Assembly (NCBI GenBank): GCA_002104945.1 | Contig: MCFH01000010.1 | Location: 310,001-374,000, forward strand | Source of the DNA: Piromyces finnis finn | Taxonomy: Eukaryota; Fungi; Neocallimastigomycota | DNA length: 64,000 nt | Direction of reading: 5' to 3' | In this document: piece after piece, positions 9,977-28,293 of the stretch | How the letters are laid out: each line of letters opens with the position of its first letter | How positions within the stretch are numbered: the first letter of the stretch is position 1 | The notes under the pieces: model-generated | The model's database searches: none | What the model saw: only the letters and a program-made list of their open reading frames with translations | What the model was told of the DNA's origin: nothing | Program-made: the position numbers and the translations under genes

Positions 9977-12900
9977 ATGCCACACGAAAGAAGGAGAAAA
10001 ACAAGAAGAGCGAAGAAGCAAAAGCAAGTCGAAGAGGAAAATATTGAGCAACCACAAAATACAGAAGAAGAAAATTATGATTATTCTCAAGATAACCAAT
10101 ATGATGAAAATTATGAAAATTACGAAAATTATGAAAGTAATGTAGATAATAAAAAAAAATTATTTGATGTTAATAATTGGGACAATGATGTTCAAGCTCA
10201 CTATGGCCGTCCTTCAACAGATATTCTTCAATATTTTTCAAATATAGAAAAAATGCTTTCAGAACAAGAATTTGAAAATGAAGAAGGTATATTAAAAAAA
10301 ATAATAATTATATATATAATAGATTAATATTGATTTTAAAATTCATCATTTATATATTATTGATTTTAATTTAATACTTTTAAAATTTATTAATATAATA
10401 AAATAGAACATGAAATGTTTTTAAATAATATTTATAAAGAAATTGATGGAAATGAATTACAATTAGCAACAGATAAGGAATGTTCAAGAATTATGGAAAA
10501 AATTTTAAGAGTTTCAAATGATGGTCAAATAAGAGTATTTTTAAATCAATTAAATGAAAAGTAAGAATAAATTAAAATTATAAAAATAAACATTATAAAA
10601 TAATAATTTATAATTATTAATTTTAATTTATAATAAAATTCTTTTAAAAAGATATATTGAATTATTTACTCATCGTTATGGTTCTCATGTATGTCAGACT
10701 ATTCTTGTATTAGGTTCAGATATAATTGAAAGAGAAGTAAGAAAATATATAAATTATTATTTAATGCAAAAAAAAAACTTTTAAAGTGTTAATAATAAAT
10801 TAATTTATTTAAAAAGATTAAAGGAGAATCAGTAGTAATGACTTCTGAAGAAAATCAAAACCCACCACCAACTATGCAAGAATTAGTTATAAAGATGTGT
10901 TCTGTAAGAATAAAATTTAATATATAAATTTAAAGAGAAAATATAAATATAAAATATTAATACATGTGCTATATTGTCATTCAATATAAAGATTTTAGAA
11001 GATTATTGGATTCATTTAATATCAAATCAATTTGGTTCTCATCTTTTAAGAGTAATTTTAATGATACTTTCTGGTCAATATATTACATTAGAAAGTAATG
11101 AAGTTAGAAGTAAAAAATCTAAACAATATAATGCTAAAAATAATGCTAATTTCAAAACTTTTGAAGTATGAATACTAATTTTAATATATATATTAAATAA
11201 TATAAGCATAATTCAATATATAATAATACTTAATAATATTTTATTTAAAAAAACAAAAAATATTATTTAATATTATTAGCAAACAAAAAAGAGACAAAGA
11301 TTAGTCCCTGATACATTTAAAGAAATATTAAACAATATTTTAGAAAGATTAACAAAAGATATGGGTGTAACTGAATTACGTGTCTTTTGTGTTAATTCTA
11401 TTGCTAATCCTGTTTTACAAGTAACTTGTCAATAACTAAAAATTAAAATATTATATATTTATAAAAAAATTTTAAATATTTATTATTATCAATTATCAAT
11501 TATTATTTATTAAATTATTCGTATTTATTAATTTAATTTGCATTTGTTTAAATATAAATTTATTTTTATTTTTTTATTCAATATATATAAAATTATAGTA
11601 CTTAGTTAAAATCCAACATGAAAATGAAAATGAATCTATTATAAATAATTTATTTAGTACTAAAGAAGATGGTACAATAGAAAAAGATACATTTGTTAAT
11701 GATTTATTAAAGCATCCAGTTGGTTCACATTTATTTGAAAAAGTTTTAAAATATTCTTCTGACAAAATGTTCCATCAAATATTTATAACATATTTCCATG
11801 GTAATATGATAGAGTTATGTAGAAATAATATTTCTAATTTTGTTGTTCAACATTTGTTAGAAAATGTTAGAAGCGCACAACAGCTTTTAATTATGATTAA
11901 AGAAATTATTCCTGAGTTTGAATTCTTTTTATGTAGGTGTTGAAAGTGTTAAAATTTATAATAAATTTTATACCAAATAAAATGTATTAAATTTGATATA
12001 TATTCAAAAATTAAATTCTTAAGTTAGAGGACGTTCTGGAGTTATTGTTAAATCTATTGAAGCATGTGGAAAATTCAAAGTACAACAGAGAGAAGTTGTT
12101 AATGCTATTAGTAAGGCATTCCATGCAAGTGATAATAGAAAGATAATGATAAAGTTACTTTTAACTTTAAAGAAATATGAAGTAATTATTTTTAATATTA
12201 TAAATATGACTATGAATATAATTAAATATATTTGATTAAATTTATATAATAAAAAATATTTTATATTAATAACATTTAATATTATTTATAGGATTATCAA
12301 AGGGATAACAAAGCTCCATTTTTAATTCAAGGTGCATTAATGATTGAAACTTTATTATCATATGAAGATGGAAATAATAAATTTTTAATTGAAAGGTATA
12401 GTAATTATAAATATAATTTTTGAATTTAATGAATAAAAAAAATTAAAAGGATGTTGGTTTTAATTAATTAAAATAATATTAAATATATAACAATAGTTTA
12501 ATATCCTTAAGTCATAACGAAATTAAGGAATGGGCTACTGATGCTATTGCATCTCGTGTTATTGAATCATTTTTACAAAGCTCTCAAGTTATATTAAAGG
12601 CCAAAAGAAAAATTTTACATATGTTTGATGGTAATTATGGTGAAATTGCATGTAATCGTTATGGCAGTCACTTAGTAGATAAATGCTGGGCAGTATCAGA
12701 TTTAAAGATGAAAGAAAGTATTGCTGAAGAATTACTTGAAAGTGAAAGAGAACTAAATTCAAATTTCCATGGTAAATTTGTATTAAGAAATTGTAAGATT
12801 GAAAGCTTTAAGAGAAATAGACAAGAATGGATTGAACATGAAAATGGATTAGAAAGAAAGAAACAAATGTTTGAAGAATTATTAAATGATGATACACCAG

Positions 12901-13667
12901 CTCAAAAGAAATCATCAAATAAAGAGGAATCTGAAAATATTAAAGGTTCTGGAATTCTTGATTCTGCTCTTTCATCACTTGGTTTTAATAAAGGTTTAGC
13001 ACCGGTTTCTAAAGATAAGAAGAAGAATAAGAAGAAGACGACTGAGAATGTAAATTTTATATTTTATTATAATAAATTATATATATGTAATATAAAATAT
13101 TTATTATAAAATTAAAAATATATTTATATATTTTATTATTTATTATGTTTTAAACAATAAAAATTAAAATAGATGGAATTAGATGATGATAATCAAGAAG
13201 ATAATGTTAGAGCTAAAGAAGATATTGTTAAAACCGATGAAATCGATAAATTATTTAAAAAGAAGAAACAAATTCAAAATAATGTTAGTATTAATAATAT
13301 TAATTATATAAATATTTGTATATTAATTTCATCAAAAGCATCATATTTTAATATATTTTATTGTATAATTAAAATTAATAAAAATTATTATATATTTATA
13401 TTTTGTTAATTTAAGGCTAATAATAAATCAGATTCGGAAAGTGAAAGTGAAGAAGATGTAGAAGAAGAAGAAGAAGTTGAAGAAAAGACAGAAGAAAAGA
13501 AAAAGAAACATAAAAAGAGTAAAAAAGACAAAAAGGAAGCTAAAGATTTAAATATGGTTCTTGAAGCTATTTCATCTACAAAAAAATCAAAGAAAAAGAA
13601 GCGTTCACATAAAAATGATGATGATGAAAAATCTAAGAAGAAACAAAAAAGAAAATTCATGAGTTAA
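9977..13667 (+). CDS. NOP9: Nucleolar protein 9 (Pumilio-like repeat, 18S rRNA maturation), multi-exon
   Basis: Motifs KEIDGNELQLATDKECSRIMEKIL, THRYGSHVCQT, SNQFGSHLLRVIL, HPVGSHLFEKVL, SNFVVQHLLE, ACNRYGSHLVDKCW and ELNSNFHGKFVLRNCKI, followed by a Lys/Glu-rich tail ending KKQKRKFMS* at 13665-13667. Confidence 0.92.
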
Positions 13668-14229: not shown

Positions 14230-17200
14230 TTATTTAGCAACATTTTCAGTAAAACATGATGTAATTAATGACATTTGTTCTTGATATTGTGATAATTTAC
14301 TCTTAACATCATTAAGCATTTTAGTCATTCCTTCGGATGATGTGTTTTCATCTAATATTACATTCTTTTCTACTCTTTGATAAATTTGGTTAAGTATTTC
14401 AGTTGTTTTTTCCATTTCATAATTAGTCAAAGTTTGATGAATAACTTCTGTTTCCAAAGTAGCCTATATTAAAAATTTTTAAAAAAAATTAATAATTTGG
14501 AGAATTTCGTTGCTTAAATATTAATTTGTATTATTTATTTACTTGAAGCATTCCAGCAACACTATAATGATCAATTTCTCTGAAAGCTTCTAATAAATCC
14601 TGAACAAGATTTAAAAAAATTTCAGATAACATTGTATGTTGCAATTTTCGTGATATATCAGTAATTTGAGAATGGATTTTTACAATTTCAATAATTAATT
14701 TAGTAATATATGGTGAAACCTCTGTATACAAATATTTATTATATATAATATTTTATTCATTTAATATAATATATATAAATATATAAAAATAAAGAGTATA
14801 TATAAAACATTATTCATTATTTTTACCATGAGGGACTGTAATATAATACCAATCAAAACCACTATATAAAATACCATTTCTAACAATAACACGGATTTTT
14901 ATTAATTTTTTCTTTAGATAATTTTCAAATAATTCGCTATTTAAAAATTTTGATGATTCATATAATTCATTAACTTTTTCTTCGGAGAGACATCTAAATG
15001 AATTTTCATAAAATGTTTTAATTTTTGGGAATATAACTTCATTATAAGCCATAATATTACTCATTATGACTAAAGTTTTGACATCCTATATAAAAAATAT
15101 AATTAAATATTTTTTAATGCTTTTTATTTATTTATTTATTTATAATTAAAACTTATAACTTACATTATTTTTAATGTCAAACTTTTTATTTGGTTTTTTA
15201 TGATGATCGACCATTGTTGTTGCTGAACTAATATTTACTGTATTTAATTCACTACTAATTGAATCATTTAATACTCCAATACTACCAATATCTTCTCCTG
15301 AATTATTTTCATTTGCTTTAACATTTGTTGTACCAATTAATGGGTTATTCAATTTTTCGCTTTCAATAACTTCAAGAATTTCTGATTCCGATGCAACAGA
15401 AAGAAAATGAAAACTATCTAATAATGCAAAATTGGATTTAATAACACAAGTTTCAATTAATTTTATTAACTTTTCGTGTAATTCAATATCATCTTCTAAT
15501 TTATAGAAATCGAAATTAGATTTGGAAGATTTCACTGAAAACATTGAATTTGTTCTTTTACTATTTTTACTTAGATTGTCATTTAAAATGATTGATTCTT
15601 GTGAAGTATGGAGTTTTGTTATAACATTTAATGTTCTTATTATAAATTTAAGGAAGTTATAGAATAATTTAATATATAAAGTTGTATTTGATTTTTCATA
15701 TGTTGTTGATTCTGTTTCTTTTGATATTACTGATATTGGCTTCCTAGTAAGTGTTGATATAGGAAATAATGAACTATCTTCAGATGCTTTTAACCTTAAA
15801 TTAACATATATATCATCATCCATGATCCAATTTTCATACTTAAAGAAAGTTTTAGATTCTTTTTATTAAAAATCAAATATTATATATATATTCAAAATTT
15901 AAATTTTAGGGTTATTTTTGAGTTTTATTTCAATTAAAATTTGTATTTATTATATTATAAAATTTTATTTTTACCTTGAATTGTATTTTTTGAAATAAGC
16001 TCAACTGCTCTTAATTTCAAATTATTAATTAAATCATGTAATGGGGATAAAATAATATCTTCTTTATTATATTTTAAAGCTTTTATTTTATTATATGTAC
16101 TTGAAATATTTTTTAAAATAATACTAAGGAAATAGCATGCAATTAATGGATGAGAATTAACAAATAAAGAACATTCTATAGGAATCATTTGTTTTTTAAA
16201 ATTTACAGAGAAGAGTACTTCCCCATTTTCCAATGAGTATTTTGAATCATTTTTATCAATATCATTTTTATTATCAACTTCATTAATTGAGTTATTTTCA
16301 TTTGAATCTATACTAATATTGTTTAATGAATTTAATTTAATTGGTGATGAAAAAATAGTATAGTCTTTATCTTCATTTTTTCTTATATTATTATTTGAAT
16401 TACTATCTATATTTATTGCAAGACTAGAACTACTTTTTAAATATTCATTACTTTCATCATTAGTAATATCCTTACTTTTACTAATTCCTTTTTCTTTATT
16501 AGCTTCAGCAAAAGCTGCATTACCAATTGAACTCATATGACTAATTGGATTATATAAAATTGATTTGGTTGTAGATGTATCAATAATGATACTATTTTGT
16601 TTTTCCTTTTCTTGTTCTTCGCTCATACCAATTACTCCTTTTCTTTTCTTTTTTTTTAAAGAATTATTTATTTGTGTTTTTTTTACTTTTTTTTCATCTT
16701 CCTTTTTTAATGGAATAACAATAATCTCTCTTTTTCCTTCCAATGAATTCTGACTTTCTAATGTAAATTCATTATCATCATCATCATCATCATCAGAACT
16801 ACTGCCATCATCACTACAATTTGCATAAAAATCACTGAATTTACTTTTTGTTTTTTCTGAGAGTTCTTCAAATGAATTATCCAAGAATAATATTTTAGAA
16901 ATAAGAATTGTGTATAATTCAACCATTTGTCTTATTATTAGTTGACATTTTTCAGCTCTATCATTTTCTTCTTTGGCTTCATTCTTTTTTTTTTTTGAGA
17001 ATGAATCCTAAAATAAATTTATTTAAAATTTTTAGTAAATATTAAATTTATAATTACATTAACTTTAATTAAATTTATCGCTTAAAATTTACCTGGTCAT
17101 ATCTTCCTTCTATATAGTGCATACAAAGTTTCCAATAGTCTGGAAGGAACTTCATTAAAACAGAGGATAACGTTTTAATAACTTTTGACATTTTCACCCA

Positions 17201-19942: not shown

Positions 19943-20787
19943 TACAATTAAATTGTTTTCTTTTCATTAAAATTCATTAAATTTTTAATATATTAGATAT
20001 GTATAATAAATTATTTTAAGTATAATAAAAATAATATGTGAGCAATAATTAGATATGATATATGATGTATTAAATGATATTAAATAATCTTAATTTAAAT
20101 AACCGATTTATTATGAATTAATAAATTTAAATTTATAATTTCTTTATTATTTACCTAAATAAAATAGTTTATAGAATACTTTCTAAATATCACACATTGA
20201 ATTATATTCGAATAAAAAAATTTTTTTTAAATTTCTTTTTTTATATTTATTAAATTTATATTCTATTTTACTATTTTGTTCAAATATAAAACTAAATTAT
20301 ATTTTTTATACTATATACACTATATATATGAATTTTATATTTATTTTTGTTATTTTTTTAAAGTAAAAAAAAAAAGAAAAGAAAAAAGAAAAGATATATA
20401 TAAATTTAATTATGTAATAGTAATTTTAAAAATGTTTTTCTATCATTATTAAAAATTATTAATTTTATTATTTTTTTTAAATGGAAAATTTTAATTAATA
20501 AAATTTCATCTTAAATTTTTTTAAAAAACAAAAAAGAAATTTAAAATAAAAATTTATTATTGTTTGACAATTTTAATAAAATTTTTTATTTAAAAAACGA
20601 AAAATGTTTTGAAAATAATAAAATCAAAGATTGAGTAGTGAAAAGGAATAATAATATTAATAAATTAAACAAATATTTTTTATATAATAAATTAATATTT
20701 TATTATATACATTTTACAGTACTCTTAATATAAATTATATTAAAAGCATATTATCACATATTAATTAAAGAAAAAATAATAAAAAAA

Positions 20788-22221
20788 ATGGAGAAGTATA
20801 TTACAAAAACTTTTAAATCATATACTGTTTTAAGAAGTTATTCTACTTTTGTAAATAAAAGTAAAAAATTATTAGATATTATAAAACCTGGTGTAGTTGT
20901 CGGAAATGATTTATATAAACTTTATAATTATGCAAAAGATAATGGATTTGCCATTCCTGCTGTAAATTGTACTTCTTCTTCTACTGTTAATGCTACTCTA
21001 GAAGCAGCAAAGGAATTAAAAGCACCAATTATTATACAATTTTCAAATGGTGGTTCTGCATTTTATGCTGGAAAAGGTTTAAATAATAAAAATCAAGAAG
21101 CCGCAACAATAGGTGCTATATCTGGGGCACTTCATGTACGTCAGGTAGCAAAATCATATGGAATTCCTGTAATTTTACATTCTGACCATTGTGCCAGAAA
21201 GCTTTTGCCTTGGATGGATGGGATGATAAAAGCAGATAATGAATATTTTGAAATCCATGGTAAAAATAGTATATTATAAATAAATAATCCAATTTAGAAT
21301 ATAATTTTTAAGATTTCAAATTTCAAATTATAAATTAAATTTTTATTTATTATTATTGAAAAATTATTTAATAATAATAACTATTTATTTATTTCAAAAT
21401 TTCAATAATAATAATAATAATAATAATAACGTTCTTTTTAAAATTATTTTTTAAAATTACATTTATTAATAATTCATACCATTTTTGCCAACATTAATAT
21501 TATATTTATTAAAATAAATTTTTATATTTTTAATAATATAGGGGAACCGCTCTTTTCTTCTCATATGTTTGACCTTTCGGAAGAAAATAAAGAAGATAAT
21601 ATTAAAACTTGTATATCTTATTTCAAAAAAATGGCCAAAATAAATCAGTTTATTGAAATGGAAATTGGCATTACCGGGGGCGAAGAAGATGGTGTTGATA
21701 ATACAAATGCTAAAAATAGCTCATTGTATACTAAACCAGAAGATATATGGGATGTCTATCGTGAATTTAGTAAAGTTAGTCCATTTTTCACAATTGCAGC
21801 AGCATTTGGAAATGTTCATGGTGTATATAAACCAGGGAATGTTGTTTTACGACCAGATCTTTTGGGAAAACATCAAGAATATATTAGAAATAAAATAAAT
21901 TCTAAAGAAAAGAATCCAGTTTCATTTGTTTTTCACGGAGGTTCAGGATCAACAAAGCAAGAAATTCAAACTGCTCTTCAAAATGGTATTGTAAAAATGA
22001 ATATTGACACAGATACTCAATGGGCCTATTGGTCAGGTGTAAATAATTTTTATAATAAAAAAAAGGATTATCTTCAAAATCAAATTGGAAATCCGGAAGG
22101 TAATGATAAGCCGAACAAAAAATATTATGATCCTCGTTCATGGCTTAGAGAAGGTGAAAAATCAATGGTAGAACGTATTAAAGAAGCGTGTATTAATTTA
22201 AATAATGTCAACATATTATAA
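20788..22221 (+). CDS. FBA1: Fructose-1,6-bisphosphate aldolase, class II type A, two exons (intron 21261-21541), with an approximately 25-aa N-terminal extension
   Basis: AIPAVN, IIQFSNGG, VILHSDHC, the spliced junction HG|EPLFSSHMFDLSEE, EMEIGITGGEEDGV, FGNVHGVYKPGNV, FVFHGGSGS, KMNIDTDTQWAYW and PNKKYYDPR. The Zn-ligand and catalytic motifs are intact. Confidence 0.97.
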
Positions 22222-22608
22222 AAATATACTTTTTCAAAGCATATAGTAATAAAATTGTAACATATATATAATATAAGCAGAAAATATTATAAATATGAAA
22301 ATAATATATAAATTCAACATAAAGAAATAAATTTTTATCAAAATAAATAACTGAAAACTTAATAAATAAATTGATACCGCTTCTAAAAATTATTAGTTGG
22401 ATATTTATTAAAGTATTTTATAAGGTAACACTTACAATTAATTATTATCGTTATTATTATTTTATTATTATTATTATTATTATTATTCAAATAATTTAGA
22501 AATATATATTACACTACATTTAATATTAGTATCTATAAATTATATAAACTTATTAATTTATTTAAATATGATAAATATTATAAATATAAAAAAATTATTA
22601 AAAAACAT

Positions 22609-24640: not shown

Positions 24641-28293
<3,653 letters not shown>

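Follow-up and report, generated by a model that had tools for sequence, protein, structure and literature searches.

We describe a second fructose-bisphosphate aldolase gene in the anaerobic gut fungus Piromyces finnis, which differs from the canonical gene by an N-terminal extension. The gene lies at positions 20788 to 22221 of the plus strand in a 64-kb stretch of the genome (G000:C2:310001-374000 in an assembly of 56.46 Mb and 232 contigs), hereafter called the window. It encodes a class II enzyme of 383 amino acids whose active site is intact. We lean towards reading this protein as an aldolase paralog that would be imported into the hydrogenosome and would lose a presequence of the R-3 type on the way, as comparison of sequences suggests. 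A first-pass annotation of the window had noticed the extension and proposed an organelle-targeted aldolase. It lacked the fact that the gene is a second paralog, present beside a canonical aldolase of 358 amino acids.

The window gene encodes an aldolase with an additional N-terminus

The gene consists of two exons. The ATG at 20788 opens a frame that reads MEKYITKTFKSYTVLRSYSTFVNKSKK and then enters the conserved core LLDIIKPGVVVG, and the nearest upstream in-frame stop, a TAA at 20731-20733 on the plus strand, bounds the frame 57 nt before the start. Exon 1 (20788-21259, plus strand) encodes residues 1-157 and the first base of codon 158, and matches positions 3-97 of the Pfam family PF01116 (F_bP_aldolase; E 2.6e-22, 80.1 bits). 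Exon 2 (21542-22221, plus strand) encodes residues 158-383, ends with the TAA at 22219-22221 and matches positions 96-274 of the same family (E 1.5e-55, 189.1 bits; 100% identity to the database protein P0001). Both scores are well above the curated cut-off of 25.5 bits. The intron between the exons (21260-21541, plus strand) is 282 nt long, has GT..AG borders and 8.5% G+C, and shares its position with the intron of the canonical paralog. The spliced product equals P0001 residue for residue (ORX54718.1, 'fructose-bisphosphate aldolase, class II [Piromyces finnis]' at NCBI). The window intron also holds an (AAT)n run, and the intron of the canonical gene at the same codon measures 98 nt.

Residues 2-358 of E. 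coli FbaA (PDB 1B57) align collinearly with residues 27-383 of the window protein (E 5.7e-145). Because residue 2 of 1B57 aligns at residue 27, about 25 residues (1-25) are extra. The extension, codons 1-27 (20788-20868, plus strand; MEKYITKTFKSYTVLRSYSTFVNKSKK), is absent from both the canonical paralog and FbaA and is a candidate organelle-targeting presequence. The next Met after Met1 is residue 143, so no shorter form can be started near the core. Thus the start of the frame, the head before the core, its absence from FbaA and the distance of more than 130 residues to the next Met, all claimed in the first-pass annotation, hold. Within 300 nt upstream of the start, the only ATG belongs to a two-codon mini-ORF (ATG TTT TGA; 20604-20612) at -184.

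The enzyme itself appears sound. In the alignment with 1B57 and the fungal set, every zinc ligand and every catalytic residue is kept. Across 24 aligned sequences (13 orthologs with the extension, 11 canonical aldolases of fungi), D133, H134, E196, E198, E205, E206, H250, H289, N311, D313 and R356 are invariant (numbering of P0001; the E. coli reference residues are D109/H110, the E174/E182 loop, H226, H264, N286 and R331). The ratio of nonsynonymous to synonymous substitution rates (dN/dS) of the core is 0.05-0.12 in pairwise comparisons, and AlphaFold2 (AF2) predicts a confident TIM barrel with a mean predicted local distance difference test score (pLDDT) of 83.9. From the conserved residues and the core dN/dS we infer that the product is a catalytically competent class II fructose-1,6-bisphosphate (FBP) aldolase. 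It shares PF01116 and the zinc and catalytic residues with the canonical class IIa FBP aldolases (P0032 of P. finnis; FbaA, 1B57; Candida albicans, 7YVA). The additional N-terminal residues, the low codon bias and the long stem branch that followed duplication set it apart from them.

The extended aldolase is a paralog specific to anaerobic gut fungi

The P. finnis genome contains two aldolase genes. The second, on contig C57, encodes the canonical enzyme (P0032), which starts with MGILDIVPPGVV (MGILDIVPPG), carries no extension, is interrupted by an intron at the same codon and is 73% identical to the window aldolase. The G+C content at third codon positions (GC3) is 0.419 in the canonical gene compared to 0.151 in the window gene, a contrast that fits a highly expressed housekeeping gene together with a second copy of low expression. 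The canonical aldolase can supply the cytosolic activity, and the window gene is a dedicated second paralog specific to the lineage of the anaerobic gut fungi.

Orthologs of 381-384 amino acids with the same head are found in Anaeromyces robustus (ORX85394.1), Neocallimastix californiae/lanati (ORY82848.1) and Pecoramyces ruminantium. The extended head is also carried by Piromyces sp. E2 and by many transcript contigs from JGI and Logan. In a maximum-likelihood tree of 43 sequences, the extended aldolases form a clade (support 100/100) whose sister group is the clade of canonical aldolases from gut fungi (95/93). Both clades are joined at 100/97 and are nested within the fungal aldolases. The stem branch of the extended clade is long, 0.33 compared to 0.062. 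Topology and branch length point to a duplication in the stem of the gut fungi, then a burst of change and, later, conservation. In the 120 best hits from fungi, P0082 is the one other protein of at least 340 amino acids in which the PG(V/I) motif is preceded by more than 12 residues. P0082 derives from a Logan contig, and its hydrophobic head has the appearance of a wrongly called start.

Two apparent exceptions among the extended aldolases were rejected as artefacts. The Piromyces sp. E2 protein model OUM65485.1 (370 amino acids) seems to be an ortholog without the candidate processing motif described below, but the genomic DNA reads MEKYITNSFKLNNFSKSYSTIANKNKKLLDIVKPG uninterrupted. The model contains a false intron of 39 coding nt (L024:1549-1587, KZ150833.1) that deletes SYSTIANKNKKLL, and the DNA encodes 383 amino acids. 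The protein P0135 has a different head (MNLVILQL). Its source, the JGI metatranscriptome contig L033, is chimeric upstream of codon 9: positions 1-110 are richer in G+C and unrelated to the aldolase 5′ untranslated region (5′UTR) of contigs L034, L036 and L038.

The extension is conserved and has the character of a presequence

Fourteen distinct orthologs share the extension in both length and character, which speaks against a prefix that is open by chance; the genera represented include Piromyces, Neocallimastix, Anaeromyces and Pecoramyces. Its net charge is +4 to +6 with a single acidic residue (Glu2), and Ser and Thr make up 14-30% of it; a basic, Ser/Thr-rich composition had been noted in the first-pass annotation. 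AF2 gives residues 1-22 a pLDDT below 50 and no secondary structure, that is, predicts them to be disordered. The extension evolves faster than the core while still being constrained (dN/dS 0.20-0.56), and its mean identity among the 14 orthologs is 0.62 compared to 0.85 in the next 33 residues. Scanning 13 orthologs for PTS1 and PTS2 (the peroxisomal targeting signals of types 1 and 2) and for the hydrophobic core of a signal peptide, we found none of them; the longest hydrophobic run is 2-3 residues. At the C-terminus, the extended orthologs carry NVN(V/I)L like the canonical aldolase. In charge, predicted disorder and evolutionary rate, a presequence-like nature of the extension is thus supported.

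The best-conserved internal positions of the extension form the motif [R/K]16-x-Y18-S19-[S/T]20, which is kept in 14 of 14 orthologs. In the window gene it reads R-S-Y-S-T (codons 16-20, 20833-20847, plus strand), the best-conserved stretch of the extension and a candidate R-3 site for processing (R-x-Y↓S). It is part of the LRSYST (codons 15-20, 20830-20847) that the first-pass annotation had singled out as an R-2/R-3 type motif. The form with Arg arises in 1% of shuffled extensions.

The motif recurs in organelle leaders of the same genome

The strongest argument for an organelle address comes from comparing the aldolase N-terminus (MEKYITKTFKSYTVLRSYSTFVNK) with N-terminal leaders of P. finnis proteins whose organelle location is well established. 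SCS-alpha (P0142/P0143) starts with MISGNVLTKTSVSTCKRLYSTAYDATLKNLL (MISGNVLTKTSVSTCKRLYSTAYD) and has KRLYST at residues 16-21, with the Arg at 17; the A. robustus SCS-alpha is nearly identical. R17-L-Y-S-T of SCS-alpha and R16-S-Y-S-T of the aldolase have the same form, the latter one residue closer to Met1. The other leaders are those of NuoE (MFALKPTTSLLSKSILPKASLLAARSLSSTP, ...LLAARSLSSTP), IscU (...SANLLKRSYHENV, ...LLKRSYHENV) and SCS-beta (...QTAQKRFLSVHEY, ...KRFLSVHEY). Like the aldolase head, these leaders are N-terminal, 18-40 residues long, basic and rich in hydroxylated residues, and they share with it the end R-x-(Y/L/F)-S-(S/T/V). In aerobic chytrids, the SCS-alpha precursors have ARSYAT, ARSYTV or ARSFST at the equivalent place, and we therefore interpret the aldolase motif as a putative R-3 processing site of the mitochondrial type. 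Candidate subunits of a processing peptidase are encoded in the P. finnis genome as well: one ORF is MPP beta-like and contains HFLEH, another is MPP alpha-like. In the hydrogenosome-fraction proteomics of Caecomyces churrovis (PMC13556243), NuoE is present in that fraction.

SCS-alpha is itself encoded by two P. finnis genes (L017/L018; G000:C24 and C210) with near-identical exon structure and KRLYSTAY(E/D) junctions.

The extension is part of mature transcripts in orthologs

Eight ortholog contigs without the intron hold the whole reading frame (L005, L006, L007 and L034-L038; two Logan runs and six JGI samples). As the intron is spliced out, we take these contigs as transcripts. Their 5′UTRs are 139-199 nt long with about 10% G+C, lack an upstream AUG and contain in-frame stops. 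The AUG of the extension is therefore the first AUG in all eight spliced contigs. The start context in these contigs is A-3/G+4. The G at +4 comes from the Glu2 codon, which may be part of the reason why Glu2 is retained.

For P. finnis itself, four sequencing runs from three studies contain a fraction of 0.70-0.78 of the words of 20600-22300 (run type guessed). Because the intron makes up 17% of this stretch, such a share fits spliced mRNA.

A possible route into the hydrogenosome

Under the interpretation that we favour, translation of the precursor would begin at the first AUG in the mRNA, and the basic, disordered head would carry this precursor into the hydrogenosome. A peptidase of the MPP type would then cut at R16-S-Y↓S-T, perhaps with the trimming of one further residue as at R-3 sites, so that the mature enzyme would begin about 9 residues ahead of the canonical N-terminus. 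The canonical paralog, highly codon-biased, would serve cytosolic glycolysis. We infer import, cleavage and any organellar metabolic role of the aldolase from the features described above.

A number of observations weigh against this route. Glu2 is invariant in 14 of 14 orthologs and is atypical of matrix presequences; the reference leaders start with MF-, MN- or MI- and lack an early acidic residue. The aldolase head further differs from the P. finnis leaders in that Lys outnumbers Arg and Ala and a KNKK block, itself conserved, follows the motif, and the KNKKLLDI that follows the putative cut is more conserved than a mere spacer requires. Arg16 is replaced by Lys in Pecoramyces and Piromyces sp. 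E2. AF2 shows no helix in the extension. The maximum hydrophobic moment (0.56-0.69) is matched by 5-37% of shuffled extensions and is not distinctive; the NuoE and IscU leaders do no better and lie below the canonical aldolase N-terminus, so this measure does not discriminate. Transcript support in P. finnis is weak, coming indirectly from the word content of runs. The organelle location of SCS, NuoE and IscU is established, and it is from this general background that the location of the comparators is taken. Finally, the enzymes next to aldolase in glycolysis have canonical N-termini (see below), and a genome-scale model of N. lanati based on DeepLoc does not, in the main text of its paper, list a hydrogenosomal aldolase.

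Partner enzymes and metabolic context

The first-pass annotation had proposed a search for other glycolytic paralogs with presequences. The two enzymes acting directly downstream of aldolase have none. TPI is encoded by one gene, which starts with MARKFFVGGNWKMNG and has no presequence. The three GAPDH genes start with MVIKVG, MTIRVG and MVVKIG (M(V/T)(I/V)(K/R)(V/I)GINGFGRIGR), likewise without presequence. Since TPI and GAPDH start canonically, the immediate downstream steps are without targeted copies, and an organellar role of the aldolase would need an exchange of FBP or triose phosphate across the membrane. The alternative would be another aldol reaction or a non-glycolytic role of the organellar aldolase. 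One part of the earlier interpretation stands, namely an extension that is real, obligatory, conserved and presequence-like with a leader-type motif, whereas a triose/hexose-phosphate step in the organelle finds no partner enzymes in TPI or GAPDH. The genome also contains three PFK genes and one GPDH gene. In the TPI gene (L008; G000:C201, minus strand), no second in-frame stop occurs in at least the first 30 codons past the TAA stop (SQDQSASSALNNESKPTNSEPVIGSSSLSC...).

In the literature that we searched, no paper links an aldolase with the gut-fungal hydrogenosome. The supplements of PMC8561657 have no aldolase entry, and the main text of the C. churrovis hydrogenosome proteomics (PMC13556243) is silent on a hydrogenosomal aldolase. 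The hydrogenosome metabolic maps of anaerobic fungi, as given in PMC8561657, PMC9026988 and PMC13556243, begin at malate or pyruvate and include no sugar-phosphate step. P. finnis has two malic-enzyme genes (L015/L016; G000:C198 and C211), and the C198 copy opens with MYINEKYISIGTSF, without an evident presequence.

Retargeting of a duplicated glycolytic enzyme is already known as a kind of event. A close parallel is the mitochondrial glycolysis of stramenopiles (Rio Bartulos et al. 2018, PMC6198282), where cytosolic glycolytic paralogs gained an N-terminal presequence of the mitochondrial type. The two cases differ in that stramenopiles target several successive enzymes of the pay-off phase, while in P. 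finnis the aldolase is extended and TPI and the three GAPDHs are not. The organelle also differs, being a fungal hydrogenosome.

That an FBP aldolase is active in the hydrogenosomes of these fungi is a more tentative proposition than the targeting of this paralog, and we place it somewhat short of probable. If true, sugar-phosphate chemistry (FBP to dihydroxyacetone phosphate and glyceraldehyde 3-phosphate, or an aldol reaction akin to it) would proceed within a mitochondrion-related organelle of a fungus. The hydrogenosome would thereby gain a new class of substrate and a new transport requirement, that is, a so far unknown passage of FBP or triose phosphate across its membrane. The relocation of a glycolytic enzyme to an organelle of mitochondrial descent would then have a second, independent case outside the stramenopiles. 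With the protein defined, orthologs in all sequenced genera and an existing hydrogenosome proteome data set (C. churrovis; PXD073882 / MSV000100685), the question is directly testable.

Other explanations of the extension

The strongest competing explanation is that the tail serves a cytosolic or structure-bound isozyme as a tether or regulator, in a protein of low abundance that is perhaps stage-specific, for example to the zoospore or flagellum. We consider it possible but rather unlikely. The low GC3 of 0.151 suggests low or conditional expression, and the invariant MEK(Y/F) and KNKKLLDI blocks speak for a sequence-specific constraint beyond the needs of import. The unusual Glu2 and the lack of a targeted copy for the other glycolytic steps tested (TPI, GAPDH) point in the same direction. 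Such an isozyme would resemble the N-terminally extended sperm isoforms of mammalian aldolase A, class I enzymes whose tail tethers them to the fibrous sheath: in both, a flagellated cell type would have a duplicated aldolase with an extra N-terminal tail. The presence of a flagellum-related ORF close to the gene in P. finnis is a weak and probably irrelevant argument. However, the best-conserved internal motif of the tail is an R-x-Y-S-T as found at the end of the SCS-alpha leader; the tail is basic, disordered and nearly free of acidic residues; and a motif scan of 13 orthologs revealed no known tether motif. Were the tail to mark a stage-specific cytosolic isozyme, the result would be a modest one on isozyme specialisation.

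A second explanation, which we judge improbable, is weak or dual targeting. Here the protein would be partially imported or associated with the organelle surface, with most of it cytosolic and the organellar pool minor or incidental. The shortness of the extension, with 18 residues ahead of the putative cut, would suit such a situation, as would the invariant Glu2, the Lys for Arg in two species and the absence of targeted partner enzymes (TPI, GAPDH). Nevertheless, the extension predates the divergence of the sampled genera and its dN/dS is below 1, which argues for selection, an argument that applies to full and partial import alike.

Finally, a mis-called start or an unselected 5′ addition is very improbable, as the two sequences that would favour it, the Piromyces sp. 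E2 model lacking part of the extension (370 amino acids, through the false 39-nt intron) and P0135 with its different head (from a chimeric contig), are themselves artefacts, no alternative Met precedes residue 143, the extension AUG comes first in eight mRNA contigs and the extension has a dN/dS of 0.20-0.56.

Other features of the window

Upstream of the aldolase gene, an ORF at 12621-13109 (plus strand) gives a hit to the NOP9-like PUF domain at its C-terminal end (PF22493, E 1.3e-15); this ORF probably represents the final exon of a larger gene. Two adjoining ORFs of 225 and 323 amino acids at 15146-16926 (minus strand) have no Pfam match. Downstream, a 297-amino-acid ORF at 26889-27782 (plus strand) gives a hit to the integral peroxisomal membrane peroxin Pex24p (PF06398, E 2.3e-15), here in the genome of an anaerobic fungus.

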